Origin: Vitrella brassicaformis CCMP3155 | Taxonomy: Eukaryota; Protista; Chromerida | Direction: 5' to 3' | Assembly: GCA_001179505.1 (NCBI GenBank) | Contig: CDMY01000356.1 | Coordinates: forward strand, 62,001 to 126,000 | Length of the DNA stretch: 64,000 nt | Shown: piece after piece, positions 19,121 to 61,935 of the stretch | How the letters are laid out: each line of letters opens with the position of its first letter | How positions within the stretch are numbered: position 1 is the stretch's first letter | Notes under the pieces: model-generated | Database searches by the model: none | Told to the model about the DNA's origin: nothing | Seen by the model: the letters and a program-made list of their open reading frames with translations, nothing else | Position numbers and translations under genes: made by a program

Positions 19121-19353
19121 ATTTGATGCATACATAACCACACCCAGCATCCACCAACACCATGCCACGTACAGACACACCCAGCCATACAGCCATACAG
19201 ACAGACAGACAGACAGATGAACAAAACCGAAAAACGTCGCTGGCGTGTCATCCATTCATTCCTTCCTTTCTTGACCATCCAGTCTTGTGCGGCCATCATA
19301 CAGCGACACAGCCATACAGCCATACAGACAGACAGACCGCCCCCCATTATCAC
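19121..19353 (-). mobile_element. Intergenic copy of the intron at 60960-61182 (candidate introner-like element)
   Basis: Shares a core including gatgaacaaaaccgaaaaacgtcgctggcgtgtcatccatt with 60960-61182. Similarity ends at positions equivalent to the intron's GT and AG. The flanks are unrelated. Confidence 0.6.
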
Positions 19354-20155
19354 CCACCCCACCCACTGCTCTCTGTATTGACACATCCCTCACTCACCAA
19401 GCCAAGAAGAGCCCCCGCTCCTCCCCAAGGCAAGGCAAGGCAAGACAAGAGTGTGCGGATCGATGGCTGCGACAACGTATTGCGTGTGTATGGCTGGTCA
19501 TTTCATGATGTGTCTGTCGTGGATCCGGAAGTAGAGAACCCTCCTCCTTCCCTCGTCCATGCAGGAGTGAATGAAAGACGCATTCGTCGAGCACAGGCAG
19601 GCAGGCAGGCAGGGGCGCCGGTACAAATTGGACCAGCGCGACGGACGGACGGACGGCAGGGATGTCTGTGTGAGTGAGTGACAGAGAGAGTGGGGCGTTG
19701 CCCACTCGAGCCAAGGACACTGACTGACGCGCACGCGAGCGGGATTACGAGACAGACGAGACGACTCCTCTCTCTCTTGCCCTCGGTGCGTGGTGAATCG
19801 TGTGTGGTGGATGATGGATGGATGGATGGATGGTTGGTTGTGTCGCGTGTAAGTGTGTGGGTGAGTAGGAAACTCTCTCTCTCCCTGGCTAAACTGAAAA
19901 ACGCCCCCAGTCATCACTTCCCCTCCCTCCCTCCCTCCCTGCCTCTCTCTGATGCTCTCTCGGATGACCCAGTAGGGTGTTGCGCTTTGGGTACACACGC
20001 ACACACAAGAATGCATGGCATGGCTGCCTCGATGGATGTCCTTATGCAAAGAAATAACCTATCACGTACTGGTATGGTTGTGCATTCATTCATTCATTCA
20101 TGGTGCGTATGGTAGGTATGCAGCCGCAGCGAAGCGAAGCGAGACGAATGAATCG

Positions 20156-20179
20156 ACGTACGTACGTACGTACGTACGT
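20156..20179. repeat. (ACGT)n self-complementary microsatellite
   Basis: Read directly: acgtacgtacgtacgtacgtacgt. Confidence 0.9.
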
Positions 20180-23100
20180 GACACGCAGACTTCTCGCACG
20201 CAGAGTGGGGAAAACTGGCCTGTCTGGCCTCAGCAGACGCACGTACACGTAGCAAGCACGACATAGACATACAGCAGCAGCAGCAGCGGATGAATGAATG
20301 AATGCACCAATAAAATTTCTCGATCGGCCTCCCCCCCTCCCCCCACACGACACAGCGAAAAATCTCTCACGTAACCGAATGTATGCAATGCAAGAGACTT
20401 CCCCTCTCCTCTCCCCCGCGCACACCACACCCACCCAGACACCCAGCAGAAAGAAGACAGGAGCTAGACGGTCGCCGTACGTACGGATGTGTGGATCTGT
20501 GTATGTATGTGTGTGTGTGCTTCAATACATTACATTACATTACGTGTGCCTGAGCGAGTATGTAAGTATGTATGGGTGCGGGAGAAACGAGTGGCGGAGT
20601 TGCATGCACGCCTGCCTGGGTCGAGAGCACGCAGCACAAGAAGAACAAGACGAAACACTACAAAAATGCCGACAATCCAATCAGTCAATCACTCAGTCAC
20701 TCAGTCAGTCAGTCAGTCGACAACGCACAGACAGAGTGCCCGTAAGTAACCGAATGCAATGCATGGCTGCAGCCCTCCACTCTTGAAACATACAATCAAC
20801 CAACACGGGAGGGAGGGAGGGACCAACGACCGACCGGCCGACCGACAAACGAAAATCGACCGCGCCACACACACAGACAGACAGACAGTCAGAATCAGAG
20901 GAAGAGAGTGCCGCCTACCGCCACATCAGTCCCACACGCCACGCTTACATCAATCAACAGGCAAGTCGGCATCCATCCATCCATCCATCCATCCATGAGC
21001 TCCCCTCCCTCCTCCCTCTCTCCCTCCGGCCCGCCCGTCCCCTCTCCGCTCGGCAAAAAATCTCCCTCGCAGACGAGTAGGCACGCATAGCATAGCATAG
21101 CATACAGCACACCACAGCACACCATCACACACGATTGAGTGCAGTCGCCGAGGCGTCACGCAGACATACACACGCACGCACGCACACAAGACGGACAGAC
21201 AGCCACGCCCCCTTGTCTCCCTCCCTCCCTCCCTCTCCCTGCTTACACGTTCCGTGTAGTCGTCGCTCGGTGCCCTCTCGTACATGCAGCCACGCAGACA
21301 CCAACATGCAGGAGGCAGGCATGCCACCATAGGTAGATCATTACCATGCAATCAATGCATTCTGTCATTCAGTCAGTCATGCAGGTGGACAGTAGCTAGT
21401 CATCTCTCTCTCTCTCTCTCTCCATCCCTCGCTCAGGCGTGGCGTGCATGTGATGTGTGTCTTGTCTGGTGTGTCTCAATCATCTGGTCTCTGGTTGTTG
21501 TGCCACAGACAGTGAGTGGCATTGCATTCATTAGTCATTCACTCGCACATGAGCGATAGGAGAGCAGCCCCAAGACATGACGGGCTAGACATCTCTCGGA
21601 CGTAGCGTTAGTCAGTCACCTCCACACTGATTTGTCCCGACCCCTCACTTCCACCCCTCACTCAGGAAAAAACCAGGCCACAGAGCATCAGACACAGGCG
21701 CATACAGGCAGGAGACACGGATGGCATGGCGACACACATGCACGCGTCGTGGATGGATGGATGGATGGGGGATGGTGTGGTGTGGTGTGGTGTGGGTTGA
21801 AAAACTGCTCGGTGTGGGTGTGTGAATCGACGAGTGCACAATGCACTCACCAGTCCATGCATCCATCCATTCCTGGAAACGGATCTCTCCACTCACTCCA
21901 CTCCGCTCCAAAAGAGAGAGGCCATCCAATCCGTTGACAGCACAGCACCCCTTCCCTCCTCGTCATGCACCGCACCCCACCCCCACATCACAGTTATCAT
22001 GACATTGACATGTACGCATGTGTATGTATGCAGCAACACACACCACACCACACCACATCCCACCACCCGGTTGAAAGAGAAAGCAGAAACGCAGATAGAC
22101 AGGACGACAGACAGACAACCGACAGTTAGACTAGCTAGCCAGAACTGCATGCACATCTCCCTCACTGCTTTGCTTGCTGTCCGCCCCTCCCCTCCCCTCC
22201 CCTCCATCACCTCACCCGATCCACCCACCCATTGCTCTCTCTCCACCACACATAATAGTACAGTGCCGTCCACAGGCATCCCTCCCTCCCTCCATCGATG
22301 TCTCGGTGCAAAACGCGTCCGTCTGTGGTGAAAATGGCCCCGCTCGCCCGCTGCCCCCCTGCACTGCACGGCATGAGGGGGGCAGAGGCCGACCGACCAA
22401 CCTACATGGAAAAGACGGACTGGACTGTCTCGTCGTCGTTGTATGCATCAGCGCATCGCATTGGTTGCATCTCTCTCGGGTCATCTCTCTCTCGCCCTCC
22501 CTCGCTCCCTCGCTGATCTGGCCCGCCCCTCTCCGCCTGTCTGCCGCATTGGATGGTTCATAAGATAAGGCACGCCACGCCACGTCACGTCACACTGGTT
22601 GGTGCATGTCGACACCATTCGGGATGCATTACGTATGAGCCGCGGAAAACCCCAAGCAAGGCCGCCTGACCTGACCCACCCATTCATTCTCTCAATCGGA
22701 TCGCCTCTCTGAGGCACACACGCACAGCGAGCGACACACAGGGATGGATACCCAGACAGACAGACAGACAGCACACGGCACACGGCACACACTTACTTGT
22801 CACGGTCACCACATGACATTTATCGCATGCATGGCAGATAGATAGATAGCAATGGGTTGATGATAAGTCGATAGATAATAGGTGGATGGAATGGAATGGA
22901 ATGGAATGGATGAATGGATGTCCATTCATTCTTCTGTTCATTCAGTCATTCAGTCATTCTTCACGAATACACACGGCCAGACAGACACATGCCTGCCATG
23001 CCGCTCACATGACTGTGCGGCAGGGCAGGGCATGCAGCACGGCCGGCGATTGGAAGAAAAATACACGCAGACAGACACAACACACGACACAACACACGAC

Positions 23101-24910
23101 AGGCAGGCAGGCGATAGATAATAGGTAGACAAACAAGACTGGCAGGCAGGCATCACATGTCGATGGGCGGCACAGAATAGCATGCCATGCATACGCAGCA
23201 TTGTATGTATGGCGTAGGGTAGCAGCAACTAGAACCGACCAAGGGGCCGGGGAGGGGAGGGGAGGGGTAAGTAAGAAGCGGGAGAAAAGCGCAGCGACGG
23301 CAACGGGGCATCACGGACACACGTGTGTCGTGTCGATCTATGCAGAGGATGAACATCGACTGTCTGACCGATCGGCAGGCCTCTATCTTAGCCACAGGTA
23401 GGTATGCGGCTGTGTGGACGAGGGGCGGACAACATGGACGCACAGACAGACAGGCAGGCAGACAGGCAAGCAGCAGGCCAGCGCTCACGGTCACGGACAT
23501 GCATCTCTCTCTTTGTATGGGCTGACTCTGATCGATCGGTCGGTTCAAATGACAGCCAAAACATCATCCATCGCTCCACCCACAGTTGCCCCTGTCGCCC
23601 TCATGCGTCACCATCCCCTCCTCGCACGCACACATGCATTGCATACACAGACAGCACGGAAGCCAACACGGCAGCCAGGCAGTCAGCAGCAGCATCCATC
23701 GAGAGAGTGGCACGGAACGACGGGTGAGTGAGGTGAGAAGAATGAATGACCTTAGGGAAAAAACCCAACCTCGCTCAAAAAGCGAGCATTGCAATGCATT
23801 GCCAACATGCACGCCACGCCACGCCACGCACAGAAACCCAGCACCTAACCTCCAGCAGTCACTCACGTCACCCCTCCCTCCCTCCCTCCCTCTCCGGCTC
23901 TCAGACGCTCCATCGCTCCATCGCTCGCCTCTCACTCAGGTGTACACGCACGACTCACTCGTGTCTGTCGTGCCGTGTCTGTGTATGTATGTACTTACAA
24001 GACTTGTGTCTCAAGAATGGCTGTCTATGGTCGATTCGATCTAAATGCACGTGTGGCTGTCGCTCGCTCATACCTCACTCAGTTGCTCTCTTCGATCTGT
24101 CTTCACACAGAACTCTGGCATGCATGCTTGCTGTGTGTGTTGCCCGCCTGCCGTCAAAAAGGCCCCGGCTGCCTGGCTGCTGGCTGTCTTGTCTGTCTGT
24201 CTGTTCTTGTCGACCGGCAGATCCGCACCACCCAGTCCACACAGCGAGCAGCGCTCCCTCTCGTGTGTATATACCTCTCTCGATGCATGTCACGCCATGC
24301 GTGCGTGTGTATGTATATGTGTGTGTGTGGTGGGTATGGTTGAGGGGGGAAAAGGAAGGCTCGCTCGCTCGCTCCTTTGGGACGGCGGATGGGTCATTCA
24401 TTCAGGGACAGACGGACAGACAGACAGCAACAGCAACAGCGGTGCCGATTCTCACTCATAGCACATGCCATGCACACGTACATGGAGACGAGCAAGAAAG
24501 ACGAAGGAGCAGAGTGGTAGAGAGGCGAGGGAAAGGGGATAGAGAGGGCAGGGATCGGTCGGTGCTGTGTTGTGCTGGTGCTGTGCTGGTGAAGTGTCGA
24601 TCGATCACAAGACGGACAGACAGACAGACAAACATGAAGCCAGCCATGGACACCGGGAGAAAAAGCAACACACAGCACCGCACGCCAGGCAGCCAGCCAG
24701 GCAGCCAGAGTGCAAGAAGATGACCGCCCCATGGGAAAGCCAGCCAAGCCAGGCCAGGCACAGACCGATCAGACATGCAAGCAGCGTGAGCTGATATCAA
24801 TCAGCATCGACATGCACCATCCATCCATCCATCGATACATGACATGTAAGTGAGTGTGTGTGGTCGTCATCCATTCATCCATCCATCCATCCGTTCATTC
24901 GTTCATTCAT

Positions 24911-27900
24911 TCATTCTTCGTATTGCACGTTGGCGGCGGCCTTCAGCAGGTCTTCGGTCACGGTGGGCATTGGCACGGGAATGGGCAGCGGCATCGACAG
25001 CGCCCGGTACTCCTCCATCCCGCCACCGCCCCACATGCCGCCCCACCCGTCTCCCCCCTGGTTGCCCTGTCCGTACCCGAACTCGCCGCACCCCATATTG
25101 TGCATCCCGCCGTACTCCATGCCCCAGTCGTCCATGCCTCCACCATGCCCCTGGTGCTGGGGGTGCATGTAGCCGCCGTGGTGGGGCTGCATGTAGGGGT
25201 AGTAGGAGGCGTTGTCGTAGTAGTGTGCGGCCGCGTGGGCCTGGGCCTGGGCGTGGTGGTGGTGGTGGGCGAAGGCGGACGAGTCGTTGAAGTCACTGAT
25301 GCGGCGAGGGTAGGGGCCGTGCTTGTGGGAGGGGTGGGGGAAGCGGCCGCCGCGGTGGTGCCTGTACCCGTAGCGCCATGAAGAACCGTAGCCGTGATCC
25401 TGACACGCACAACACACACACACGCGACAGCAGCACAGTACGTGACTCAGTGTTCACTCCACTCACTCCCAGATTCATGTGTGTTGCCTGCCTGCCTGCC
25501 TGCCTGCCTGCGTCACCCCGCTCCCTTTTCTCTCACCGACTTACCATGGATGCAGCTCTGTGTCCGCGCGCCATCTGCCAGTCGTGTTCGGCTAGAGCCT
25601 TGACCACCTGGATGCTTACTTCCTCGCCGTCGCCCTCACCATCGGCCTTGTCGACAGAGATGCCCAGGCTCTCCAGCGACAGCGGGCGGAAGTTGGGTGG
25701 GTGGGGACCCACGCCACCCTCCTCCTTGTCGCTCGCCGTCTCCTCTTTGTCGTCCTCTTGCTCGTCGGCCGACTGCTCCTGTTGGCGCTTGTTGTCGGGC
25801 GAGCTGACGGGCGAGTTGCTCGACGAGTCGCTGACGCTGGTGGATGTGGAGCGGAGGGAGAGGGAGGGCTTGGGGGCGGGGTGGGTCTCGCTCTTGGATG
25901 AGGGGGAGGGGGACGACCCGGTGGTGCTCTCAGCACTGTCGCACGCCACAGTCGACGCCACGGACATGTTGCGGTTGCGCAGCAGGTCAGACGCGGCACC
26001 GCCGTCACTTGGCTTGTCGCTGCTCTCGTCGGCCGCCGGCTCGTCAGCACCCTGCTCCTGTCCGTCGGTGTCCTGTTCATCGTCCTCCTGCTGCTGTTGC
26101 TCCTTGGCATCTTGCTCGTGAGGGTGGAGTGGGAGCAGCACGTCAAATGCCGGCGGGGTGGCGGGTTTGGTGTTGGCGGTGGGGGTGGCGGATCGGGGTG
26201 AGGGGATGGAGAAGAACGAGGCGGGGGAGGATGGCTCCTTGAAGCTCTTCGAGTCCTCAACGCACTCGGGGTGGTCGCGGAGATCGATCCACGCTGAAGA
26301 AACAGAAACCACAACCACCAAGACGTATGGGCACGGCGCATCCCTTTCTTTCCTTGTGTGTGAGTCGAGCTGTGTCTTACGTGTCTGTCTCTCATTGTGG
26401 GTGTCAGGCGATGCATCGATGGCCGTCGAGGGCGTCACGTCGCTCAGAGTGATGGTGGTGGTGGGGCGGTCCTTCTTGCTTGGCGTCTCGCACCCCTCGA
26501 GCTCACCGGACCTCTCACGCTCGGGCTCCATCGTGTCGGACGACCCGCACACACCAGCAAACGCACCATCACCATCCTCGGCCGTCTTGGAAGCAGCGGC
26601 CGTGGGAGTGCTGTCGTCGTCGTCCTTTTGCTCCTCCTGCGGCTGGGAGGGGACGATCTCTGCCTCGGCTTCTGGCTCGGCAGACACGTCCTCCTCAGGC
26701 ACGGGCTGCTCGCCGTCTTTGGGTGCCTCGCCGTACTCCTCTTCCTGTGCCTTGCCGCCCTCATTGCAGCCCTCGTGCTGCTGCTCCTGCTGCGCGAGGC
26801 CGAGCATGCGCGCCAGCTCCGCCACCCATGTGGCATCAGCCGTCGGCTCGGTGTCGTCCATCTGTCCCTCCTGCTCCTCGTGAATGGTTTCCTCGTAGAG
26901 CAGGCCCTCGCACTCGCGGCCCGGCCCCGCGGGGGGCCCGTATCCGTTGATGCTGTCGGCGGTGCTGCAGCTGCGGGAGCGGTGGGGATACATGGGGCCC
27001 AGCATGTCGGCCACCACGTGGTCTGCGGGGCCGCAGCCCATGCCAGGGAACTCGCCCCCGTAGTGCATGGCGGCGTCCATGTCGGTGAAGGCGCCGGCCA
27101 TGTTGATGTCGGCGCAGTTGATGGACGCCGATCGCATCTTGCCGTGGTGGCCGTATCTGTGTGGGGCGTAGGGCGAGGCGAACGGCGGCAGCGAGTCGAA
27201 CGAGCAGCCGCGGGAGGGCGGCCCGCGGGGGTTGAAGTACTTCTGCTGCTGCATCTTCTTGAGTCGCATCAAACGCTTCTGCTTCTCGGATCGACGATAC
27301 CTGGACGGCAGCAACGGAGAGAGAGACGACGGCAGGGCGTCAGGTGGTGTGCGTGTGTGTGCGGGTGTGTGTGTGTTGGGTCTCACCTTCTGTCGCGGAG
27401 TTCTTCGTCGCCGTGGGCATGCCTGCAGTACTCGCCCAGCGGACACGCACCATCTGCAAATCATAGCGGCACACATTGGACACACGAGCGAGATCGATGA
27501 ATGTCAGTCATCTGTGTGGCTCGTTCACCTTTCTTGAAGAACTTGCACATGGTCGTCTTGTAGTAGTCGTCGGTGCACCGCAGCTCCGCCACACCGTGAG
27601 CAAACTTGCCTGCGATGCATGCAATCCAATCAACACACACAAGGCATGACCGCCATGCGCGGCAAAGTGGTGTTGCTTCCTTACAGTCTCTTCGGTTGCA
27701 GAGTCCCCGCTCCCATGCCTTGCAGAGTTTGGTCTTGTAGAGATCGACCGTCTCGCGCAACTCGTCCTCGGAGTGGGCGTACGTGCAGCTCTCACCCTTC
27801 AGGCAACGACCCTGACCAGAGCGAGGGAGTCAGTGACGACACGCAGCCATCGCTCAAGATGCATTTGCTTTACTCTTCTGTCGCACGCACCTCTAGGAAG

Positions 27901-28159
27901 AAGGGGCACATCTTGGTCTTGTAGAACTCTGATGATTGACTCATTCATACACATCGCACACATCACACGCGTCGCAAACAAGCAAAGCACAGACACAGAC
28001 ACATGGGACAGACAGTCAGACAGTCAGTCAGTCATCGGTGGCTCATCCGCCCGTCTCCATCAGTCAGATCTCCCCACCCCTCGTGTGCTTACGGTCTGCC
28101 GGAGCGCCCCCGCTCTGAGTGCCATCCTCAGAGTCACCGCACACCGAATACGCGGACAT
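24911..28159 (-). CDS. Tandem 3x CCCH zinc-finger RNA-binding protein with long low-complexity C-terminus
   Basis: Spliced fingers: [13 protein letters not shown]|[38 protein letters not shown]|[11 protein letters not shown] and [12 protein letters not shown]|[20 protein letters not shown]. The last exon ends [12 protein letters not shown]. Confidence 0.9.
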
Positions 28160-28290
28160 GTCGCTGTCTGTCGCACAGCAGGAAAGGCCTCTCGGGATTG
28201 ATTGAGTCTCTGTGCGTATGGGTTTCCGAGCCACACACGCCCGTCCAAAGTCTTCCCTTAGCAGAGATCTGAGTTTACGCTGACTGGCAA

Positions 28291-28298
28291 AGCTCGCA
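28291..28298 (-). promoter_or_regulatory. TGCGAGCT candidate promoter element (CCCH / LHC pair)
   Basis: AGCTCGCA on the plus strand, between ATGs at 28159(-) and 28345(+). Confidence 0.55.
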
Positions 28299-28344
28299 GT
28301 TGAGATCTCCAGTCCCAGCGTGAGCGCTCGACGACACCACCAGG

Positions 28345-28798: not shown

Positions 28799-28835
<37 letters not shown>

Positions 28836-45902: not shown

Positions 45903-46201
45903 NNNNNNNNNNNNNNNNNNNNNNNNNNNNNNNNNNNNNNNNNNNNNNNNNNNNNNNNNNNNNNNNNNNNNNNNNNNNNNNNNNNNNNNNNNNNNNNNNN
46001 NNNNNNNNNNNNNNNNNNNNNNNNNNNNNNNNNNNNNNNNNNNNNNNNNNNNNNNNNNNNNNNNNNNNNNNNNNNNNNNNNNNNNNNNNNNNNNNNNNNN
46101 NNNNNNNNNNNNNNNNNNNNNNNNNNNNNNNNNNNNNNNNNNNNNNNNNNNNNNNNNNNNNNNNNNNNNNNNNNNNNNNNNNNNNNNNNNNNNNNNNNNN
46201 N
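45903..46201. other. Assembly gap (299 N), followed by a poly-C run
   Basis: N characters in the sequence. Confidence 0.99.
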
Positions 46202-46267
46202 NCCCCCCCCCCCCCCCCCCTTCGCCGGGGCGGGTCATCCATCCATCTGCCTGTCCATCCCATCACT

Positions 46268-47296: not shown

Positions 47297-48270
47297 ATGA
47301 CGGTGCGCGTGTGGACTGACGGTGAGTGAGGGGAGGGACAACAGGGGGATGCATGGGATTCGATGCCTTCTACATCTCTCTCTCCGCCGCTTCTCTGTGA
47401 GCGCTGCCGCGTGCAGGTGCCTGCCTCGGCAATGACCATCCGCTCGTGCCGGCTGGGCCATCTGGTTCGGCGATGACCATCCTCGGTAAGGGAAGGCACA
47501 GAACACAAGAGACACGACAGGAGGGGGGAAGAACACTGGTGGGTGCGTGTGTGTGTCTGTGTGTGTTGCTTGTGTGTTAGCAACGTCTGTGGTCGTCCGT
47601 TCGGCAAGGAGACGAACCAGCGTGCAGAGTTGGTGGCCGTCATCAAGGCACTCGAGGCGTGCAGGTGCGGGCAGACGTGTGTGACGGCCATCAAACACAA
47701 CGGATGGACTTCTGTGTGCATGTGCAATCTGTGCAGGAATGACCTCAGCACCACCCTGGTCATCTTCACGGACTCCAAGTACACGATCGACTGCATGCGC
47801 AAGTGGCTCAAGAAGTGGAAGAAAAATGGCTGGACCAACTCATCGGGCAATGTAAGTACACTCTCCCACGCGGACCAAAGACATGCAACTCAACATCATT
47901 GCATCATTGCTCTATGTGTGTCGTGTGTATGTGTTGTTCAATCAGGACGTTGCCAACCAGGACCTGATCAAGAAGTTGGACTCCCTCATGCAGGCAGGCA
48001 CAGCCACAACCCAAAACAATACCGACCCGCACGTGTGTATGTGTGGTGTGTGTGTGTGTGGGTCAGGAGCGCAAGAAGGGCGGTGCGCATTGCCACCTCG
48101 AGCACCTGCCGGCCCACAACAACAAACATGGCAACGAGCAGGCCGACCTCATGGCCAAGAGGGCTGCCCAGAATCTGCCCGTGCCTTCCTATCCGGACAG
48201 CATCATCCTCTACGTCAACTACGTCAACTACGATGACGACTCCGACTCCTCCGATGACGACTACTACTAG
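47297..48270 (+). pseudogene. RNase H1, tandem copy A; frameshifted in exon 2 (pseudogene or consensus error)
   Basis: Six exons: VWTDGAC, RAGWAIWFG, TNQRAEL, FTDSKY, WLKKWKKNGW, VANQDLIK and HLPAH..GNEQADLMAK. Only 11 nt (47434-47444) lie between GGCAAT and CGTGCC, which breaks frame. Confidence 0.7.
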
Positions 48271-49904
48271 TCCTCCTCCGATCCCTCCGATCACACACAC
48301 ACACACACACACACACATACATATACACACACACACATACACACACACACATACATGCATACAGGCTGGTGGTAGTGGTGCCTTGGGGGAGGGGGAGGGG
48401 GAAGGAAAGCGGAGGACACGTGTCGGTCTGAGTGTGTACACACAATACAGATACATAGATGACTTACTTACGTCGTATCCATCCATCCATCCACCCATAC
48501 TCACTCGGGCGATGTGGCGGTATGGGTGTTCAGAGGATAGGCTGGCCTGTCATGTGCAGATTAGGGCAGGCAGCTCACCTTGTACAGTCAGTACAGCACC
48601 TGTGAGAGAGCACCTCTCCTTCCATCCACTACACACACACACATAGATACACACAGAGGTGGGTGGGTGTTCCTGTCTTGTCGATATGTGGGGAGGCAGG
48701 CATCTCGCCACACCCAAGAGTTGCATCTCAGGGAGGCACCTCAGTTGCCACCCTCGGATGTTGCCTTGGGTGTGGCGACGTGCCTCCCTTCCCACAGCTG
48801 CGCTTTTTGTCGACGGACAAAAGCAAGCACTAATGGACTGACAGATGAGCGATCGAGCGAGCGAGCGAGCGTGTGCGTCGCTGCAAAGCAAAGGCAACGC
48901 AGCAGAAGCACACGATCGCTGCTTGGCTCGGATCTGGTGGCCTGCCTTGTGGGGGAAGGAAGAGAGAGAGGGCAGACAGCCATGCAAATGGTATGTCTGA
49001 TGCCGCTCTGGGCCTGTGGGTAATGCGCTAATGTAGTGCACGCATGTACACACTTATACAGTATGTATGTACATATGTGGGCGCTGACAGACAGGCCCTC
49101 CCGGGCCCCTGTTTTGTCAGAGTTCGTCTGACAGTCATGACTGACCGACAAACGTGAGTGACGTGACTGAGTGCGATTGATTGGCCGGATGGGTCAATCA
49201 ATGCACCTGTTGTGGGTGGAGCCACTGCTATGTCTCTCATGTCTGTCTGTCTGACTGACTGTCTGTCTGCACCCAGAGCGGAGTGCCTGTACAGAAGGCT
49301 GCGCACACGACGGACGAGTTGGTTCTGAGTGAATCACATCACATCCTCCCGGTGCGATTTGATTTGTCGCGTGTCGTATCGCGATGGTCAGACAGGGCGA
49401 TGCGATGAGGTCGTGTGTGGGCACACATTCGGGCCACCCACTTCAGACACCTTCACCCACCCCCACGCCACACTACACACCAACCGCCATTGCAAAACCC
49501 ACACACATTCCAGCAGCTGGCCACAGCACACCATCACATCAACCCTCATCTCCTCCCTCCTGCGGATGAGTCAGACAGTCAGACAGACAAACGCACGGAG
49601 GGAAGGGTAATTTCACCAGATTCTCTCGCTTCCTGCGCTTGCACAAGACGAACAGAGGACAGTCACTCACCCCCACACGACGGAGACACGGAGAATGGGA
49701 AAAATCCCATCATCCAGGGTGACCGGAAAACGGGACTCCCAACCGTCAACCGCAGCCCGCACATTTGGGCGTTGAGAGTCTTCTTCAGTTGTAGTCGTCC
49801 AGACAAAGGCGAAGGAAGGAATCTTCGGTCAGTTCGAAACTGTTTGGAGCACTTGAGCACAGCTTGTTGGTTGAACGTGAGGCTTGGCTTGCTGCTGCGC
49901 GAAG

Positions 49905-50899
49905 ATGTCGGTGTCGGTGTGGACGGACGGTGAGTGGGAGGGACAAAGGGGGAGAGGAGGAGAGGGGGGATGCGATGTGCCCTTCTGTATCCCTGCTGTC
50001 ATTTTGCCTTGTGTCCCCTTGTCTTGTCTGTGTGCAGGTGCCTGCCTTGGCAATGGCACGGGGTACCCTCGCGCTGGATGGGCCATTTGGTTTGACGACA
50101 ATGACGCCGAGTAAGCGAGAGAAGGAACAGAGCACAAGAGAGAGGTTGTGCGTACCTGCGGCTTCCCCTGTGTGTGTGTGTGTGTCTTCTGCAGCAATGA
50201 CCTCAATCGCTTGTACGGCAAGCAGACGAACCAGCGTGCGGAGATGTTTGCTGTCATCAAGGCACTCGAGGCGTGCAGGTACGGTCCTGATGGCACATCT
50301 AACACTCATGTGCCACATCACTCGGGCGCACGTCTGCGGCGCGTGCGGTGTGGGTGTGCAGGGATGACCTGCGTTATCCCCTGGTCGTCTACACGGACTC
50401 CAAGTACACGATCGACTGCATGTACAAGTGGCTCAAGAAGTGGAAGAGCAACGACTGGACCAACGCGCTAGGAAACGTAAGCTCTCCCACACGCGCACCC
50501 CACCTGAACCCCTGCCAGCCGGATCGTCTCTGTGTTGTGTCTGTGTTGTTCAATCAGGACGTTGCCAACCAGGACCTGATCAAGACGTTGGACTTCCTCA
50601 TGCAGGCAGGCAGAGCACCACGAAAGAACATCAGACGTACGACACCGACTCTCTCTCTCTCTCTTGTGTGTGTGTGTGTGTGTGCCTGTGCGTGTCAGGA
50701 GCGTGAGAATTCTTCCTGGGTGTGCACGTTGTGCGGCGCCACGAACGGCGGCGTGACCCTCGAGCACGTGCCTGCCCACAGCAACAACAAGGGCAACGAG
50801 GAGGCCGACCTCATGGCCAAGCACGCCGCCCAGTTCTACGACGAACCCTACGACCAGGACGCCATCATCCGCGAGTGCCTCGACCAGTACGACGACTAG
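49905..50899 (+). CDS. RNH1: RNase H1 catalytic-domain-only protein, tandem copy B
   Basis: MSVSVWTD|GACLGNGTGYPRAGWAIWF, TNQRAEM, VYTDSKY, WLKKWKSNDW, VANQDLIKTLD and HVPAHSNNKGNEEADLMAK. All four D-E-D-D carboxylates are present. Intron positions match copy A. Confidence 0.88.
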
Positions 50900-52744
50900 A
50901 TTCACACATAGATAGATCCATGCAGCAAACTGAGGTTGGGAGGGGTGGGAGGTGGCTCATGGGGCGGGGATTGGGAGGGTCGGGGAGGTTTGGGGGGGCT
51001 GACCTGTATACGTACGATATTGATATCCAATCCATAGATGTGTATTGTAGGTGATGTGGGGCGCTCTTGTGCATAGGTAGGTATCTGTCCATAGGATGGA
51101 TGTGTAGATTTGTCCAGCCGTAGTCCAGGCATCTCACCGCACCGCACCGCACCGCACCGCACCTTGCCTCCACTCCACTTGCGCACACAAACACGCAGAC
51201 ACACACACACACACACACAGGTACACACGGGTGGGCGTGTGGGCGGGTGTTCCCGTCTTGTCGATACCTTTTTTGTCGACAGAGGGTGTGTACTGACTGA
51301 CTGACTCTGACCGAGCACTGCGGTGCTGGTTTGATAAGGGAGCGAGCGGGCTCGGCTCGTGAGGGAAGGAACAGAGAGAGAGCGCGTCAAGCCATGTCAA
51401 GCCATGGAAGCTGGCATGATGCCGCTCTGTCATGTATGTGTGGCTAATGCGCTAATGTAGTGCATCGCTCACACATCTCTGTGGGCGCCGAGAGCGGTCG
51501 CCGCACCCCCTTTGACTGACTGAGACATGACTGACGTGGCTTGTGCGACTGTCACGCATACAATGCGATGGCGATGAACTCGCAAAGTGAAGAGTGTGTC
51601 TCGTCTGTCGTTCTGCACCACGAGTGCATCGATACAACGAGCCGGCCCGGAAGGGCAAACAGAGCCGTGTGCCACTCGTGGCGGCGGACTCATGAACGAA
51701 CGAATGATGCTGATTCTGAATGAATCGGATCACTCGTGTCGCGGTGGCCAAGTCCATTGACAGATGCGATGGCTCGTGCCATGCAATGACGGACAGTCAC
51801 GGGCCCAGAAGGCGACCCGGCCCTGCATGCGCGCAGCACAGTGCATGACATGCGAGAGGCATGCCGAGCGACGAGAAGCGACCAGCACAAGACGGTCCGC
51901 GCTCACCGCACACGAGCTGACACAAAGTGTCACTCATCGATGCGATACCGAGCGACAGATGGGGGGAGAGAGAGAGAGGGAGATGGGCAGGCAGGCAGAC
52001 AGGTACACATCCGCCACACATCCACCAGCAACGCATCTATGCATCAGGACAACCAAAAATGTCAGAGAATCAAAACCGAACACCACCGAAACAACCCCAG
52101 CCGACCCACACTCCCATCACCCAGGGCGTCGCTGTCCATTTCCTCACGCGCCATGAACTGCTTCATCTACAGGAACACACACACACACACACACACATGG
52201 CGTGACATCCCGCCTCATGTGCTTCTTCTTCTGCTATACTCGCGAGCGTACATGTCTCCAGGTGTGGTCAATGGTCATGTTGATTGCAGCGGGTGACGAA
52301 GAAGAGACACACATGTACACAAGTGCTGTTGTCTCTCGTTACTGCAGATCGTGTGGCGGCGGTCACCTGCAGGTCTGTGTGAGTTTGCGTGGCCCTTTCT
52401 CTGTGCGAATGACTTATCCGACACCGACTCACACACAAGTTGTTGAATCAATCATGTCAACAGAGTCATGTACACACACGCGCGCACACGAACATATGGA
52501 TCGATCACACAACAAGGTCAGCCTGCCGTCCTGTCCTCTGCCACCAATCAGCGAAAAAGTCCCCTCGATCCCCCCCTCACTCACTCACTCACTCCACAGT
52601 TTGTCTGTCGTCTGTCTATCTATGTATCTATCTACAAGGCTAGCTCCCGCGCTGCATTCAGCCAGACCACTGACTGTGTGAGTGTGTGCCTGGCCTGTGT
52701 GTGCCCCTTGGAAGCACACACGCCCCTGCCTGCCTGTGCCTGCC

Positions 52745-53601
52745 TCACAGTGGCCTTTTCTTGTTCTTGTTGGCGTAGTACTGGTCCTCTCTCTCCTGCT
52801 CCTCCTGCGCTGACAGCACCAGCATCTCCGCCTCGTCAACCGTCAAGTCGTCCAGACGAGCAATCAGCACCTTCCGCTCGTAATCGCGCAGCTGCACACA
52901 GAACACATCACATGAGACAGCGTCAACACAGCCACGTCACGTATCCATCCACCCTCCCCTCCCTCCCTCCCTCCCTCGCTCCCTCTGACTGACTGACTGA
53001 CCTGTCGAGCGTATGTGGTGTCTTTGGAGTAGACGCGGAAGACATAAGTGAGTGTCCAAATGAGTGTGGCGACGCCCACGGCGCCCACGCCAAACCACCG
53101 CTGGAGGTCGAACTCGTCCATGCCCGTTGTCTCCAGGATGTAGCTGTAGAGGAAGAACGGCGCTATCGACAGGAACAGCGTGCCCAGGATGACATTGCCG
53201 CGGGTGAGGGGGATGGGGAAGTCGTTCTTCTCCACGTCCTCCTCCCCCAGCTTGACCACGGCGGCCTTGAGCTCCTCGATCAGCTGCCGCCGGTCCTCCT
53301 CGCTCATTTCTTCTTCGTCTTGGCCGCCCTTCCCGTCGCCCTGTGCTGATGCCGGTGTGACGGTCTTCGTGTCCGCATCTGCCTGCCGCTGCGTCGGCTG
53401 CTGTGCCGGCGGTGCGAGAGATGCCGACGGCTTCTCTGCGACTGTGTCGCTGAGCCTCGTCCACTGCGGTGAAAGGAGGGATGCACGCCGGCCGATAGAG
53501 GAGAGCCGCACGCCAGATGGGGAGAAGCAGAGCAGCTGCTGCAGCGGTGCAGCTAGCAGCAGCAGCAGCAGCAGCGTACCTGATGACAGAGATGGCCACA
53601 T
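52745..53601 (-). CDS. DUF3007-family plastid (cyanobacterial-origin) membrane protein with bipartite leader
   Basis: Two TMs, then WTLTYVFRVYSKDTTYARQ|LRDYERKVLIARLDDLTVDE, matching the remembered DUF3007 pattern TYxFRVxxKxMTYxQQLxDYE. Leader MWPSLSSGTLLLLLLLAAPLQQLLC-FSP. Confidence 0.8.
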
Positions 53602-53636
53602 CTTTCTTCTTGACCAGCCAAGCTCGCCATCGCATG

Positions 53637-53644
53637 AGCTCGCA
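53637..53644 (-). promoter_or_regulatory. TGCGAGCT candidate promoter element (DUF3007 / HPR pair)
   Basis: AGCTCGCA on the plus strand, with a near copy AGCTCGCC at 53621. Confidence 0.55.
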
Positions 53645-53806
53645 AATAGATGAGCCTCCGTTCCTGGCGCTTCGTCTTCGAGCTGCAGCATGTCTGTGGT
53701 ATGCACCTCATCATCGATTCGCGGAAGATCTTTGCCCATCCAAGCTGAGACCTGACTCTGGGGCCATCTGCTCACGTCAGCACTCATGGAGGAGGCCACG
53801 TCGCGG

Positions 53807-56800
53807 ATGAGATGGCTGGCTGCGTCACGGCAGTGCATGCCTGCCGCATCCAGCCATCCGAGGGGTACTCATGCCCTCTGGTTGTGGCGGCTGGGTCAGC
53901 GGCGGTTCAAGACGCGGGTTCAGCAGGCCGTCAGGATTGGCCAGAAGAACCTCAGGCAGCACATGAGAAGGGTCAGCCGCCCGCCGACACGAAGCGATGA
54001 ATCACTGGATGCATCCCATCTCATCTCTCGCTTGTTCTCTGGTGGTACCATCGCAGGCTCTCAACCGTGAGGACCGTCTGATAATGCAGGAGCGTCGTGT
54101 GGAGCGGCCATACCGCTACCACATGGTCAAGCACGTCACCGACCCGTCAGTGGCCTCCCGCACCTCCCTAGGGAGCGGCCTGCGGTCTGCCGGGCAGGCC
54201 ATTCGGTATTTGAGCCCCTTCGGCAACATCAAGACGGCCTCGCCCAGCGAACTGGTGCAGATCGCAACTATCAGCACTGACGTGTTCAAAAGGCATCACA
54301 GGCTGTGGTGACCAGACGGGAGGGAAGGGGGCGTGCTTGCCTGTCTGTCTGTCTAGCGGATGTGTGTCTGGCGTGTGTTGTGTGCAGGAGTCGGATTGCA
54401 GGTCGGTGTATGACGCTGATGCCCCGGCTGTCGGGCAGCGAGATGGCGCAGCTCATGCACTGCTTCGCCACGGTGAGGTTCCCCTGTGCTGCTCTCTTGC
54501 GGGCTGTCGTGCCTCGGATGGACCAACTCAGGTCGGCGACCACAGCAATGAACTGTCATGTCAGGGCCGTTGTATGTTTCGTGTCTGTGCGTGTGTGTGT
54601 GCAGGATGTTTCTGAGTGGGTCTGACTATGCGATGATCCTTCATGCATTTGCCGTCTTCGACGTTAAGGACCCACGGGTAAGTGGGTGTGCCAAGCCAAG
54701 CCAAGCAGGGAAGAGTGGGTGTACGTCATGTGTGCATTTCTGTATGTGTGTGGGTTCGTGCAGGTGTTACGGCATGTGTTGGGGGCCGCCCCGCAGTGCT
54801 TTCTGGACGAAGACTATGCTGTGTGTATACAACGACAGACATTGATGGACACCACATGGAGCGGCGGGGCGTAGCGTATGGGCCCCGTGCTGTGCTGTGC
54901 TGTGCTGTGCTGTGTGTTCCTCAGGGCGACTCGTCGTGTCTGCACCGTGACCTGGCTCTCCTGTGCAAAGGTGAGAGTGTGAAGCCATCAACCCATCCCT
55001 GCAGGCAGGCAGCACAGATGCTCTGTCTGTCGGTCTGTCTATCTATCTTTCTCTGTGTGTGTGGATTGGCTGGCTGCCACTGCTCAGCGTGTGGCCACTT
55101 CGGCGAGCAGCACAACGCCCTCCTCAACTACACCTCCGAGACCTACCGCACATCCATCGATCGGTACATCAAGGCCATCGCAGAGAGACAGAGGTGAGAG
55201 AGAAGCCACACCACACGCCAGCCAACATAAAAGGGGGGTCGAGTCGGCAGACAATCTCTCCCACCATCGCATCGTGCCATGCATGTCAGGTGTGCGGCGG
55301 AGCGTGTGGGTGCTGGCCAGCTGTTTGAGCTGCCGGATGTCGACCAGGAGGCTGATGGTATGAAGGATACACACGATACATACACCACATAAATGAGGCT
55401 TGGTGGGCAGCCAGCCAGCCTTGCAAACCGTTCTCTTTTCTTCCTATTGCTCAGACCAGGACATTGCGCCTCCCAGCAGCAGAGACATCAGGTGTGTGTC
55501 CGTTTCACACACATCCATCCATCCATCCATGGCTCCATCAATGACTTGCTGTGTTTGGCGTGTGTGCACTGCAGCCACGTGGTGGGTGCCTTCAGCCGGC
55601 TGCAGGTCAAGGACGAGCCCCTCTGTGCAGCCGTCAAGACACTCATCACACGCACCACACCACCACACAAACCGGTTGCCCCGGCCGGTGGTGCTGCCGG
55701 CACCTACTGGCTCGCCGCTGACCGATATGAATACGCACACGCGTGCAGCAATCGACAGACGTCACCACCCGTACAAGCGGCCGCCGGTGGTGGCGATGAG
55801 AGCGTCATGGGGCTGCGGGAGCAAGGGAGGGGCGGTGGCTCGGTGTACAGGTGGGGTGTGGGCGAGCTGACCAGGACGGTGACGGCCATGGCGGACTGTG
55901 GATATGTCGATAAGGTAGGTGGGCGGCATGTGCGTGTAGTGTTTTGTCTTGTCGCCTTGTGTTGTGTTGTATTTATTATTTGTCAGGATGTGACGGTGCG
56001 GTGGATGGATGGAGTGCGAAAGACGCTCCACACGCTCGACATTGAGACGACGTAGGGCTGGCTACACACTCACGAACGAACGAACAGCTCGGCAATCCTG
56101 CATCCTGCGTCCTGTGTCCTTGGTTGTTTGAATCAATGGTGCAGAGTGGATGTACTGAGGGCCGCTGACCGCCTCGGTAATCATATTACCTATCCTTCCC
56201 ACCGACTTTGCACTGTGACATGTATCTCATGCCGACTTCTGGCTGGCTGCATGTCATGTCGTCAGGTTGCTACAGCCGTTGGCTGCTGCGGAGAGTGTAC
56301 AATCGCCTCTACAAGATGATGCACACTCGCACGCCACCTCCACTTGAGGTGTGTGTAGTGCATGCCAGAACTGACGCCACACCAGGCCGCACCGCACCGC
56401 ACACAGTGGTGGCCTGGCCGTGTGTGTCCCTCACACAGGTGACGCTAGACCTGCTCGATATCTACGGGCAGCTGCCATATGCACACGCCGGCCTCTCGTG
56501 GGAACTCCATCGCCGGGTCGCCCGGATTGGGGCATCGTGGACGGCTGCCGCACTGCCCCCGCTGCCCAGTGACCCCACACAAGACGACACACGCCTGTTC
56601 CTGCCATCACCCTGTGGACCCCTACTGCCACACCCACAGCCAGGACTACCAAATAAGGACCCTCGTGTCTCTTCATTGGCGCCACCAGCAGCGGTGCACG
56701 TGGCGAGCGGCCTGTCGTCAAGTGTTGTTGCTGTCGAGGATAGGGTGTATGTGCCGACGACGAGTGTTGTGGGTGTCGGCAGGGGTGCGGTGTTGCCGTG

Positions 56801-58641
56801 GCGGCCAGTGGAGTTCTACTTCCCTGACAAAGTGCCACATGCACTGCTGCCCAGAATACTACAGGTCAGTGCGCTGTAGTGACCTTGTGCCACATTCTGG
56901 TCATGTGTGATTGGTGAGATGATAGAGGGATGGATAGATGTGGACGGACGGATTCTGGTGCATTCATTGTCCATTCGTTCAGGCGACTGTGGGTGTGTTT
57001 GGCTCCATGAATGCCCCCATCCCGGTGTCTCAGCTGGCCGAGCATCTCAACAAGGCCGCCTTCGCGGGGCTGCCGACTTCTCTGCTGGTCAAAAACCATA
57101 CACACCTAGGCAACCACATAGCACAACATCCATCCAGATGGATGGATGGATGTATGACCCTGTCTGTGTGCAGCTTGATGTGATGGAGTCATGCAACGAC
57201 CACAACGGCCAACAGCAGCACCAACAGCACCAGCAGCAGCAAGACCCATCCACCCCCTCTACCAACCTCTTCGATGCCCTCCCCAAGGTGTGGCGTGCTC
57301 TCGACCGCCGGATGGCCACCTACCTCAGGCTCCCACCAGACGGCGGCAATGGTGCACAGCCTCAGCAAGGAGAGTCCCCCGTATTCCAGAGCGAGGGTGT
57401 GGGGCTGCGAGAGGCATGTCGATACGCGAGGGTGATGGCCGGGCGGCTGGGGAGGGTGGGTGGGGGCGGTGGCGATGACGGTCCGATGGATGCCATGAGG
57501 CGCCGCTTGGACGGCACCAGGGCCTGGATTGTGGACCGACTCAACGACCAAACGGTGAGGGAGGATATCTGCAGAGATACATGTGAACATATTATTGAGG
57601 GGATAGGGTGGTGCGTTCGTTCAGCCCCACCAATGGCGGACAGTCGACGAGGCGATCGATGTGTTTGAGTTCGCCCTCACGCCCTTGATGCAGCACGGTA
57701 GTGGCCATGTTGACGTGGCGGCATCCCCCACTACTGCTGCTGCTGCTGGTGCCGTTGATGCGTGGGGCGGGTCAGTGGCTCTGGAGAGCATCTCTGTCTT
57801 CCTGAGTGAGAACGGACCCCTCCTTAACAAAGCCCATGTCCAACGACTGCTGATGGTGAGCCAGGCAGCACACCCACACGAACCAGTCAGGAGCTATGTC
57901 TTCCTCTCTCCCACCCAGGTCGCCTTCACGGCCCTCTCCCACCCGTCGCTCCAAGACAGCATCGGACGCCTCACCTCCCAATTGCACCTGACGACAGCAG
58001 AGTCAAGCCAACTACAATCCTTGCTGCAGTGGGTGCAGGCCCTTGCGTCGATCGTATCGGCGGTGATCCACCGGCTCCACGAGCTGATGCCCATCTTTCC
58101 CTCTCCATGGCTCGCCATGGCCGCGGCAGAGAGCAGCCACCTGGTGCGGCTACTAGATGGCCTCCATGGAAACCTCCCTGCAGAGCATAGTGGGTGGCTG
58201 GCGGAGCTCTATTTCTCGAGCACGATGCAGCTTGCCCAGGACTGTCGGCGGCTGGTACTGCGGCCGGTGCTGACGCGGCTTGCTGAGAGCCCTGCACTGC
58301 TGCTGCCGCTCGATGCCACCACGCTGATGTGCCTGCACACGGCACTGCAGTCGAAGGGCGAGGCGTCTGCCGCCATCAGGAGACTGTCGTGGAACGCGCT
58401 CAGGTCAGCCACACCGATGGAAAGAAAGTTCATACGGCCTTCCACCCTTGTTCTGTGTCTGTCAGGTTTCCCCAGCTGGCCGCGAACAAGGCTGGCGGCC
58501 CCTTCACCGACCTTGCTCGCCACCGTGTCAGCCCACGGGCATCAGGAGAACCACCAGCTGATGCTTCTGCGGCACCCACACACGAATGGGGTGAGAGGCG
58601 GCGATCGGTCAACGACTTGCTGTCAGCTGAGCATGAGATGA
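53807..58641 (+). CDS. Heptatricopeptide-repeat (HPR) helical-repeat protein, likely mitochondrial RNA-binding
   Basis: Arg-rich, acid-free N-terminus (MRWLAASRQC..RRFKTRVQQAVR). Spliced repeats start exactly 37 aa apart: ASPSELVQIA.., LSGSEMAQLMHCFA.., LSGSDYAMILHAFA... The later exon structure is less certain. Confidence 0.7.
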
Positions 58642-59264
58642 GGCGGGGAGCGGCGTGGTCAGCCACACCTGCTGCCGCTGGTGGTGGTGGTGGTGGTGGC
58701 GTTGATGGAGTGTATAGCTACAGTGACGTGTACAGCTTGCCGGAGTGCTTCACTGCAAGTGGTTGGAGTAGTGCATCGTGCAGCGGGATGGAGGGTGGGG
58801 GTGGTCAGTGGTGCGTGTGTGCGAGGGTGCTTCGGGGCATCCGTGTGCGGGCAGTGATGGATGTATGAGACATCTGCACGGAAAATGGGAGACACACAGA
58901 CAGACGGCCAGACGGCCAGAGACGATTAGTTAGTTGAGTACACAGAGTTACATAAAAATATGCTTACCCCGCGCAAGTATGTAACTTGGCTGGCTGTCCT
59001 CTGCCTGCCTGCGTACCTACGCACGAGGATACATGGGCAAATGCACGGGAGAGGCAGGAAGAAGAAGCACACGGGGCGTGACGCGTGCCATGTCTCCTCC
59101 TCTGACCACATGCACCACACAAGCAATGTTTCCACGCCCACGTATACCATATGTGTCACTACGGCGAGGGAGGGCCCGCCTATCTCGCTTTGGGCGAGGC
59201 GACCGACTGACTGGGTAGACGACAGACTGACTGAGTAGCGTTTCTTTTTGGCGAGCCAGCGCAC

Positions 59265-59356
59265 GCATGAAGGATCATCGCATAGGCAGACCCACTCAGA
59301 AACATTCTGCACACACACAGTGTCACACACACAGACACGAAACATACAGCGGCCCG
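59265..59356 (-). repeat. Inverted duplicate of an intron-end/exon-start fragment of the HPR gene (54564-54646)
   Basis: The minus strand reads gggccgctgtatgtttcgtgtctgtg..gtgcagaatgtttctgagtgggtctgcctatgcgatgatccttcatgc, nearly identical to 54564-54646. Confidence 0.85.
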
Positions 59357-60059
59357 CCACCGCGCAGATAGAGAGACGGAAGGCGGATGATGTGTGGGTG
59401 GCCACGCGGGGATGGACGCTCGTCGTCTCAGGTGCGTACGAGCTGAATGACAGACACATGTGCATGACCGCGTGGATCCCTCCCTCCCTCCCTGGCTGTG
59501 CTGTTGTGCTGCATTCATCGTGCGCTTTCCCCACAGGTCTGTCTGTGTATCTCCGTGTCCGACGGCCCTGTGTGCTGTGATCATTAATGAAGTGTTCAGC
59601 TGGTAGCTAGATACAGTACCTACCTGGGTAGATGATGATGAATGGCGCGGCGCCAGCACTGGGGCAGCCTCGTCTGTGTGTGTGTGTGTGTGTGCATGTC
59701 CGTGCTAGCTAAGAGAAGGTCAACCGACAGATCAAAGGGCCTGCCTGCCTACTGTCGCACGTGACGTGTTCGTGTGTTAGTGAATGAGTCAGTGTGCACG
59801 GCACGGCATGCCTGATGGGGGAGCTCAAAGGAAGGAGCCTGATCAAGGGACACGACAGTAAGGAACTAGCTAGCTAACTTGGCGACTTGACCCCTTCACT
59901 CCTCCCAATAACTCATCTATATGACATGGGAGAAGATTGGACGCAGGTATGGTATGCATGACCGGTATGTCTGTCTCCCTGTCCATCCCTCTTTCAAATA
60001 AACGGTCCTCGCGTCCGTACTCCGTACCCCTTGCTCTCAGTCAGAATCCAGTCCATCCA

Positions 60060-61935
60060 TCACCACACCTCATCATCACTCGTCGAATTCAACAGCGCGC
60101 AGCGCTCCATGTGTTTTCCTTTAAGGTGTCCAAACTTGCGAGCATACTTGGACACCTTGAAGGCCGATCTGTCATCGCAATTGTCGGCGTCAAACTTGAC
60201 CGTCTGGTCAAGTTTGTGGAAGGCCGAGGCCTCGGTAGGGTCCAAGTCTGTGGGGCAGGGGTAGGCGCCATCGGCCGTCTGGCAGAGGCGATAGATGGCT
60301 GAATTCTGAATAGCCTTGTTGACACGGTCCCGGGCTGCTTCCGTGATGGCACCTCTCTTCAGTAGAACGTGAGCCAGCTGCTTTATGCTGGCACATGTGT
60401 GGTGGCGGGGAGACACACACACACACACCGAGAGACACAGAGGGGGTGCGTTACGTCGGCGCTGTTGGTATCATTCTCACTCACCTGGTGTAGAAGATGA
60501 ACTTGTCTCTTTGGCTGTCAGGAAGTGTGGCGAGATCTGGCTGATGGCTTTCCTTGTTGGACTCGAGGTTGTGGATGAGCACGTATGCAGGGTCCTCCAC
60601 GTCGGGGTTGTGCATCAGGTTGAGTCCGGTCAGAAAGTCACCCTGGCCACTGTCTCCTATCCAAATGTAGCCTGTGGCCACACAACAGACAGAGAAAGGT
60701 CATCGGTGTCTGTCTGCCCCGCCCCCTATATATCTGTGTGTGTGACAAGGCAGGCAGTTAGGCGCCACTCGCGCCACCCACCGACCTTTTGCGCCATCAC
60801 CGGCTTGAGTGTAATGGCCTCCTGGCTTGGTCAAGCTTTTGATGATGTTCTGTGCCTTCCTCTCCGCCGTCGCGGCCCAATCTGTGCTAAAGAAGTCCAC
60901 AAACCTGCCAAACCCGGACCGATCCTCGTCAACGCCCCAAGTGCGGCCGTTGAGCAACCCTTTGATGCATACATACATGACCACAGCCAGCATCCACCCA
61001 CACCACGCCACGTACAGAACAGACACACCCGTACAGACAGACAGACAGATGAACAAAACCGAAAAACGTCGCTGGCGTGTCATCCATTCCTTCCTTCCTT
61101 TCTTGACCATCCATTCCGTGTGCGGCCATCATAAAGCGACACAGACAGACATACAGACGGCCAGACGGCCCCCCATTCTCACCGGTTGCGTTGGACAGCT
61201 TGTTCCAGGATTTCTTCTCTAAGCTCTGCACAGTCACAGACAGAAAGACAGACAGACAGACAGACAAGGATTCCGATGCATGCACGTTTTGATGGCCCTG
61301 ATGCTACTGCACCCACCTTGGGGTCCCCAACGGTGATCTTTGGCCGTGCCGATACCAGACGGAAGAAGGGAGGGTGCGCGACGAAGTCGGGGCCGGCAGA
61401 AAGCTCGAGGTACAGCTGCATGAGGCCAGGGTACACCTGCACGCACACACGCACAGGCAGGCAATGGATGGGTGCAGAGGGGCCATGGTGTCTTCCCATG
61501 CACTTCATCGGTGTAGCACAAATCGTCTGACACACAAAGAGAGGGAGAGAAGAGAATTCGATGCAAAGCCACGTGGGTAACTGCCTTGTCTGTCTGCAAT
61601 GGGGAATCACCCACACCACACCTGTGCCTTTGGGCCAGGAACCTCCGCTGCCTGCACACACACCGCACAGTCCTCATGGCATTCATTGCATGTACTGTAT
61701 GCATTGGTCAAGCCAGCTGATGTATGGACTTGTCCATCCTTCCGCACGCATACGTACAGATGATGGTGTCGTCAATGTCGCTGAACAGGAGATACCCTTT
61801 TCCCATCTCATTTTGTTTGGAGAAGAGGAAGCCATCATTCTTCTTTTCTGAGACGGCCAAACGCGCATCACCCACGCAAGGGACCGTTGCCAATCCGACG
61901 AGGGTGGCGATGCCACCAAGAAATGGAATCAGCAT
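60060..61935 (-). CDS. APP1/DUF2183-like HAD-superfamily (phosphatidate) phosphatase with signal peptide
   Basis: Motif I LLFSDIDDTI, then SGGSWPKG, VYPGLMQLYLEL, LVSARP and motif IV WIGDSGQGD. Hydrophobic N-terminus MLIPFLGGIATLVGLATVPCVG. Confidence 0.75.
60960..61182 (-). other. 223-nt phase-1 GT-AG intron of the APP1-like gene, with a near-identical intergenic copy at 19121-19353
   Basis: NAT-G|gtgagaat...atcaaag|GG-LLNG; removing it restores the reading frame. Confidence 0.8.

Follow-up and report, generated by a model that had tools for sequence, protein, structure and literature searches.

Where does a new spliceosomal intron come from? The question is a long-standing one, and most recent gains have no known source sequence. 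A 64,000-nt stretch of the Vitrella brassicaformis CCMP3155 genome (contig CDMY01000356.1, positions 62,001 to 126,000 of the forward strand; hereafter, the window) raises it in concrete form: the 223-nt fifth intron of a HAD/APP1-like gene has a twin on the same strand, about 42 kb away. An earlier note, made from the sequence alone, had proposed that the two are copies of a mobile, introner-like element. We favor, with moderate confidence, a different answer, in which the intron was gained once and fairly recently by DNA-level templated (filler) insertion of locally copied DNA.

Homology between the intron and its twin stops at the splice sites

In a whole-genome BLAST search, the intron (60960-61182, minus strand; 223 nt, GTGAGA...AAAG, phase 1) was homologous to positions 19122-19353/4 of the same strand (E = 7e-68), here taken as a twin of 233 nt at 19122-19354. 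Global pairwise alignment of the two gave 201 identities, 16 substitutions (7.4%) and 22 gap columns in five indels, every one of which (5/5) falls within microsatellite arms of the (GTCT)n / GTATGGCT type, and an 84-nt core is 98% identical. The first homologous base is the G preceding the donor GT and the last is the A preceding the final G of the acceptor, so that homology ends no more than 1 nt from the splice site at both sides. The flanks cannot be aligned, and exon sequence is therefore not in common. The earlier note had described a same-strand twin 42 kb off, with a near-identical core, length differences in the microsatellite arms, limits at donor and acceptor and no shared exon sequence; all of this was borne out, the limits to within 1 nt. 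The excess conservation of the core is only marginal (P about 0.05). In the 19-kb copy, the unique core is flanked by two direct repeats of about 36 nt (19182-19217 and 19301-19336, GTCT / GTATGGCT type, 89% alike), and the corresponding arms of the intron copy are shorter and more degenerate.

Three other origins for such a pair were considered and rejected. A larger segmental duplication with decayed flanks is ruled out by the 7.8 kb around the twin, which are otherwise unique in the genome, and is also contradicted by the pattern of similarity, as neutral decay would keep exon-derived flanks more similar than the intron. The uniqueness of the same 7.8 kb rules out the 19-kb locus as a third, pseudogene copy of the host gene. 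An intron-hosted small nucleolar RNA or other RNA gene found no support either (no Rfam match, best E 0.73; fold z-scores from +0.3 to +2.0).

Related proteins were retrieved by an exhaustive single-exon search, which gave protein P0001, and by a word search with P0001, which gave P0003, a complete 359-aa open reading frame (ORF) from an MMETSP transcript. The gene was searched exon by exon, and full-length comparisons were made with these two proteins. When P0003 was compared with the window by tblastn, the coding sequence (60061-61935, minus strand) resolved into eight exons (61935-61758, 61651-61622, 61526-61504, 61436-61317, 61225-61183, 60959-60786, 60671-60485 and 60387-60061) encoding 359 aa, and bases 61182-60960 were skipped exactly at the junction SNATG/LLNGRTW (here and below, a slash marks a splice junction). 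The residues flanking this junction on either side are window-specific rather than of the type found in a paralog on another contig (see below). Splicing of 60960-61182, a point on which the earlier note had depended, is thus confirmed by a transcript-derived protein, and the P0003 junction together with the empty site of the paralog shows that removal of the 223-nt insertion is exact and restores the host reading frame.

Intron 5 is the longest of the twelve introns in the host gene and in the peptidyl-tRNA-hydrolase-like (Pth-like) gene at the twin locus (223 nt vs 58-114 nt), and its acceptor is AAG, as compared with CAG in 11/11 of the others. This atypical length and acceptor fit a young, unoptimised intron.

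The name that the earlier note gave to the host gene, 'APP1-like', stands on less firm ground, as the resemblance of P0003 to Pfam PF09949 (APP1_cat) is sub-threshold (15.7 bits vs a gathering cut-off of 27.1; E = 0.014, residues 50-109), and a Pfam search of single host-gene exons and of P0001 gave no match. Inspection of the host protein by eye showed an N-terminus resembling a signal peptide, as well as the motifs DIDDT and GDSGQGD. A search for encoding contigs with P0001 and P0003 as queries gave no match. P0003 is of the window type throughout save for an 11-residue patch of the paralog type (VKLMRSGGEEP, residues ~216-226; window 60600-60640), which points either to a chimera made in transcript assembly or to conversion between the two paralogs in the culture that was sequenced.

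A close paralog lacks exactly the 223 nt

The host gene lies in a block (59363-62003) that is homologous at the DNA level to positions 26189-28621 of contig C498, on which P0001 is encoded. This gene duplicate is broken only by the intron, with window 59363-60959 aligning to C498 26189-27759, and window 61183-62003 to C498 27758-28621. The paralog is colinear with the host gene through six other introns and is without exactly these 223 nt, reading ...AACCGGGGTGCTC where the window reads ...AACCG, the 223 nt, and then GGTTGCTC. The absence is exact, yet none of the other introns, including the one 43 nt upstream, has been lost. The earlier note had tied a splice-bounded repeat to intron turnover, and the link is upheld by this precise empty site and by the splicing of the intron in mRNA. 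The dinucleotide GG is present at both intron ends, from which an exact 223-nt microhomology deletion is possible.

The six shared introns have diverged by 7.4% (40/541) between the window and C498, a value equal to the divergence between intron and twin. Because both divergences are 7.4%, the split between intron and twin appears to be about as old as the gene duplication, an age that would suit a gain during duplication or shortly afterwards.

Exons of the two paralogs differ about three times more than their introns (20.6% vs 7.4%). The differences are concentrated in near-complete-replacement patches in the otherwise identical exons 1, 6, 7 and 8; in exons 2-5, the difference is 2-5%. The pattern is suggestive of a secreted protein under diversifying selection or subject to patchy conversion. 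In the paralog, the donor of intron 7 has been lost at C498 ~27290 (window 60484; ACCAG/GTGAG to ACCATTTGAG), with a stop after ...FIFYTI, and the C498 paralog would, given this lost donor, be without the 109-aa C-terminal exon. The NCBI model P0001 begins inside an intron tract.

The twin lies antisense in a transcribed 3' untranslated region

According to the earlier note, the twin was a decayed insertion that had lost its AG in a gene-free region. None of this was borne out. Two RNA-derived JGI contigs, L015 and L016, follow the Pth-like gene across 15850-19917 (plus strand) in segments 15850-16178, 16246-16337, 16409-16707, 16812-16846, 16905-17028 and 17105-19917, separated by five GT..CAG introns; the name rests on coding potential and a Pth-like peptide. 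The coding sequence ends near 17223, leaving a 3' untranslated region (3'UTR) of at least 2.7 kb. Both contigs are colinear with, and 100% identical to, the window through 17105-19917, such that the twin is retained unspliced, about 1.9 kb into the 3'UTR and antisense to the GT..AG sense of the element; a 163-aa ORF spanning the twin is found verbatim in JGI contigs.

The twin is without a terminal AG. A lost AG is superfluous as an explanation, because the acceptor G is supplied by the exon: when the shared 223 nt, as G+GTGA...CAAA, are placed between ACC and GGG, they rebuild the gene sequence exactly. The twin is accordingly more likely the source than a decayed insertion.

Other contigs cover 19228-20995/21209, extending transcription to about 20995-21209, and several RNA contigs stop at 20995-20998. 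The 3'UTR of the Pth-like gene (17224-20995) is unusually long for a compact genome, at least 2.7 kb and probably about 3.8 kb. Contig L017 fuses the Pth-like 3' region to a methionine-synthase transcript and is probably an assembly chimera. Further along, an ORF at 24045-24458 (plus strand) is found verbatim as the MMETSP transcript ORF P0006, which places transcription downstream of the CCCH-like gene at 24920-27616 (minus strand) as well; transcript evidence is missing only for about 21.2-24.0 kb.

Only two copies exist in the genome

Searches with the whole element, with a 106-nt core at E <= 10 and with a 37-nt pattern allowing up to three mismatches all found exactly two copies in the 72.7-Mb V. 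brassicaformis genome, one of them an intron, which rules out a multi-copy family; a metagenome scan for the element found no further copies. The whole-genome search proposed in the earlier note for copies that coincide with introns of unrelated genes thus returned this one intron only. Terminal inverted repeats (TIRs), sought at both copies, were not found, and the search for target-site duplications (TSDs) found none at the 19-kb copy and only a GG ambiguity of 1-2 nt at the gene. These numbers are to be read against the survey of Gozashti et al. 2022 (PMC9860276), whose pipeline kept families with at least 4 introns and reported families of 5 to more than 2,000 copies per genome, with transposon signatures (TIRs and/or TSDs of 3-9 bp) in many families though not in all. 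Its Supplementary Table 4 scores Vitrella_brassicaformis_CCMP3155 as introner-negative (ie = 0). The mobile introner family of the earlier note is not supported by these results, and the intron twin is not evidence for introners in this genome.

Probable intron gain from locally copied DNA

The observations above point to a sequence of three steps. A 223-bp piece of unique non-coding DNA, which today lies on the antisense strand of the long 3'UTR of the Pth-like gene, would have been copied; it shares scaffold and strand with the host gene and is about 42 kb distant from it. As a break was repaired or the template switched, the copy would have entered an exon of the HAD/APP1-like gene between ACC and GGG. 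The inserted piece, G/GTGAKA...CAAA, followed by the exon G, would then have presented a usable donor and an AAG acceptor, allowing the spliceosome to remove exactly the inserted length and restore the frame. The direction of copying (from 19 kb to the gene), the repair mechanism and the derived status of the window copy are what we infer from this arrangement.

Several lines of reasoning favor this model. The only other copy lies within 42 kb and in the same orientation, and as the chance of such proximity under random placement is about 1e-3, local copying at the DNA level is favored. If copying took place at the DNA level, only the direction from twin to gene explains why the limits of homology coincide with the splice sites, by way of selection for exact splicing. 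Reverse splicing into or from the observed Pth-like RNA is excluded, because the twin is antisense there.

The ends of the duplicated block carry further patches of this kind. At 59265-59355 (minus strand), 7 nt from one block end, lies a filler-type patch of 91 nt, an inverted copy of 54564-54646 (79/83 identical plus an 8-nt gap, 4.7 kb apart; two copies in the genome). The 54.6-kb locus (plus strand) can be taken as the source, since it consists of about 45 nt of an intron end and the first 41 nt of a well-formed 72-nt exon (CAG/GATGTT...CCACGG/GTAAGT) of a plus-strand gene. Beyond the other block end by 32 nt, a 49-nt patch (62036-62084, plus strand) is 48/49 identical to positions 283866-283914 of contig C447 and is possibly a third templated patch, copied in one direction or the other. 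Tandem RNase-H-like paralogs aside, the intron twin and the 91-nt patch are the only dispersed non-microsatellite repeats in the window, and both stand at breakpoints of the homology with C498. Examination of the C498 block ends revealed no such patches, and because filler patches are found at the ends of the window block and not there, the window appears to hold the gene copy that is derived and has been rearranged. No further local templated patches were found inside the host gene.

A bolder version of the same model, which we put forward tentatively and rate below an even chance, would merge gene duplication and intron birth into one multi-template repair or replication event, running from C498 to the 19-kb locus for 223 nt and back to the same C498 nucleotide. 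Such an event would also have left the inverted 91-nt filler from 54.6 kb, and perhaps the 49 nt from C447, at the block ends, and the new gene copy would have been born with a ready-made intron. This version fits because the two divergences are equal and patches occur at all three breakpoints.

Several points weigh against a templated insertion. The insert limits coincide exactly with the splice sites, for which a DNA-level model needs luck or strong selection, while exact limits come free with a unit defined by RNA. Microhomology at the junctions is slight (1-2 nt, GG, at the left; none at the right), and there is no clear direct repeat. Beyond the paralog, only two weak homologues were found (23-24% identity; metagenome contigs P0007 and P0008), with no intron-bearing outgroup among the sequences retrieved. 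The RNA data are unstranded, which leaves room for a minus-strand transcript at the 19-kb twin, and the background rate of short patches is only approximate, as the own-genome search scores best candidates only. Finally, the linkage of the two copies rests on a scaffold join: an assembly gap at 45903-46202, between the copies and outside the element, is of estimated length, and the join across it underlies both the common orientation and the distance of 42 kb. The DNA around the gap is non-coding and of low complexity, a poly-C run adjoins the right edge of the gap, and the gap is clear of both copies and both genes.

Alternative explanations

The strongest competitor to local templated insertion, though in our judgment an unlikely one, is an ancestral intron that was lost precisely from the C498 paralog, with a copy of the intron separately entering the 3'UTR of the neighboring gene and its final G later changing to T. 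It accounts directly for homology limits that are those of an excised intron, and it is compatible with the equal divergences. The loss itself would have occurred through cDNA-mediated conversion or through an exact 223-nt deletion mediated by the GG repeat at the intron ends. Two rare events on one intron are needed, however, and the paralog has kept the adjacent intron 43 nt away together with all the others. An RNA-derived copy would not be expected to integrate within 42 kb, the atypical acceptor and length point to a young intron, and the filler patches mark the window copy, rather than C498, as the rearranged one.

Far less probable is classical transposition, in which the element at 19 kb would be, or would once have been, an intron of an unannotated minus-strand transcript that entered the HAD/APP1-like mRNA by reverse splicing and then became fixed through reverse transcription and recombination. 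The mechanism gives exact boundaries, the twin opens with a good donor (GTGATA) in sense on the minus strand, and the minus strand of the region is G+T-rich, as in introns. The only transcripts seen there, however, are plus-strand Pth-like mRNA contigs that retain the element, and the twin ends without AG. Recombination with cDNA would moreover tend to erase neighboring introns, which are intact, and the proximity of the two copies is left unexplained.

A low-copy introner or non-autonomous transposon with two surviving copies is the least credible of the alternatives: it would match one intronic and one non-intronic copy in the same orientation, and some published families are without TIRs and TSDs (PMC9860276), but the genome holds two copies only, even at E <= 10 and with three mismatches, neither copy has a TIR or TSD, the published survey lists this genome as free of introner families, and the arms are ordinary microsatellite.

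Other features of the window

The ORF at 62029-62409 (plus strand; start MASSPEMQTTPFSNL...) is divergent from the HAD/APP1-like gene, and its first 17 codons are the 49-nt patch, which is in the same frame in C447. The tandem RNase-H-like ORFs (47477-48643 and 50147-50833, with an ETNQRAEL... motif) are 79-93% identical in pieces and spaced by 2.6 kb, and contig C317 carries a weaker relative.

Relation to known intron gains

Intron gains in Daphnia, in which newly inserted segments are spliced out cleanly between their own ends and can rarely be traced to a source (PMC4202315), offer the closest parallels. As there, presence and absence are seen at an otherwise colinear coding site, the whole insert is spliced at its own termini and consists of genomic DNA that is not intronic, and a single event rather than a family is involved. 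In Vitrella, by contrast, the comparison is between paralogs rather than alleles, a unique nuclear segment at a distance of 42 kb has been identified as the probable source where most Daphnia sources are unknown, clear flanking direct repeats are absent (only GG is present), and the event is tied to a gene duplicate with another filler patch at its edge.

Spliceosomal introns derived from organelle DNA, as in Bigelowiella and Daphnia, resemble the Vitrella intron in being traceable to captured non-intronic DNA and differ from it in that the source in Vitrella is a local nuclear sequence present in single copy. Templated insertions and multi-template junctions arise in replication- or repair-based rearrangements through microhomology-mediated break-induced replication (MMBIR), fork stalling and template switching (FoSTeS) and polymerase-theta end joining. 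Judged from sequence alone, the Vitrella locus resembles their products in that the breakpoints of its duplicated block carry short patches copied, directly or inverted, from sequence close by; the microhomologies are minimal here, and one patch became a functional intron.

Introners (in Micromonas, Aureococcus, dinoflagellates and fungi; PMC9860276) share with this intron the exact spliceosomal removal and the host exon that supplies one splice-site base. They form families, however, often with TSDs or TIRs, whereas Vitrella has two copies, one intron and neither signature. Intron transposition by reverse splicing is known from indirect cases in Oikopleura and Mycosphaerella (PMC3443670 Table 1), in which a new intron likewise shares sequence with another locus and the homology is bounded by splice sites. 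There, the partner is itself an intron; in Vitrella, L015 and L016 retain the partner, antisense in a 3'UTR and without a terminal AG, so that a spliced partner intron, the mark of transposition, is not what was found. Gains in Bigelowiella and Daphnia are placed under double-strand-break repair in the same table, and two hallmarks of that class were observed here, namely absence of the intron from a colinear close homologue and homology of the insert to non-intronic DNA elsewhere. By analogy, this intron fits the pattern of gains in which a break under repair captures filler DNA (reviewed in PMC3443670).

The kind of event is known but sparsely documented, and the Vitrella intron is most likely a new instance of it. 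The case is unusually complete: the site is filled in one gene and empty in a paralog of 93% similarity, a transcript proves that splicing is exact, a unique candidate source lies nearby, and junction patches point to templated repair. Together, these pieces allow intron birth by the filler-DNA route to be put to a direct test in a chromerid alga.

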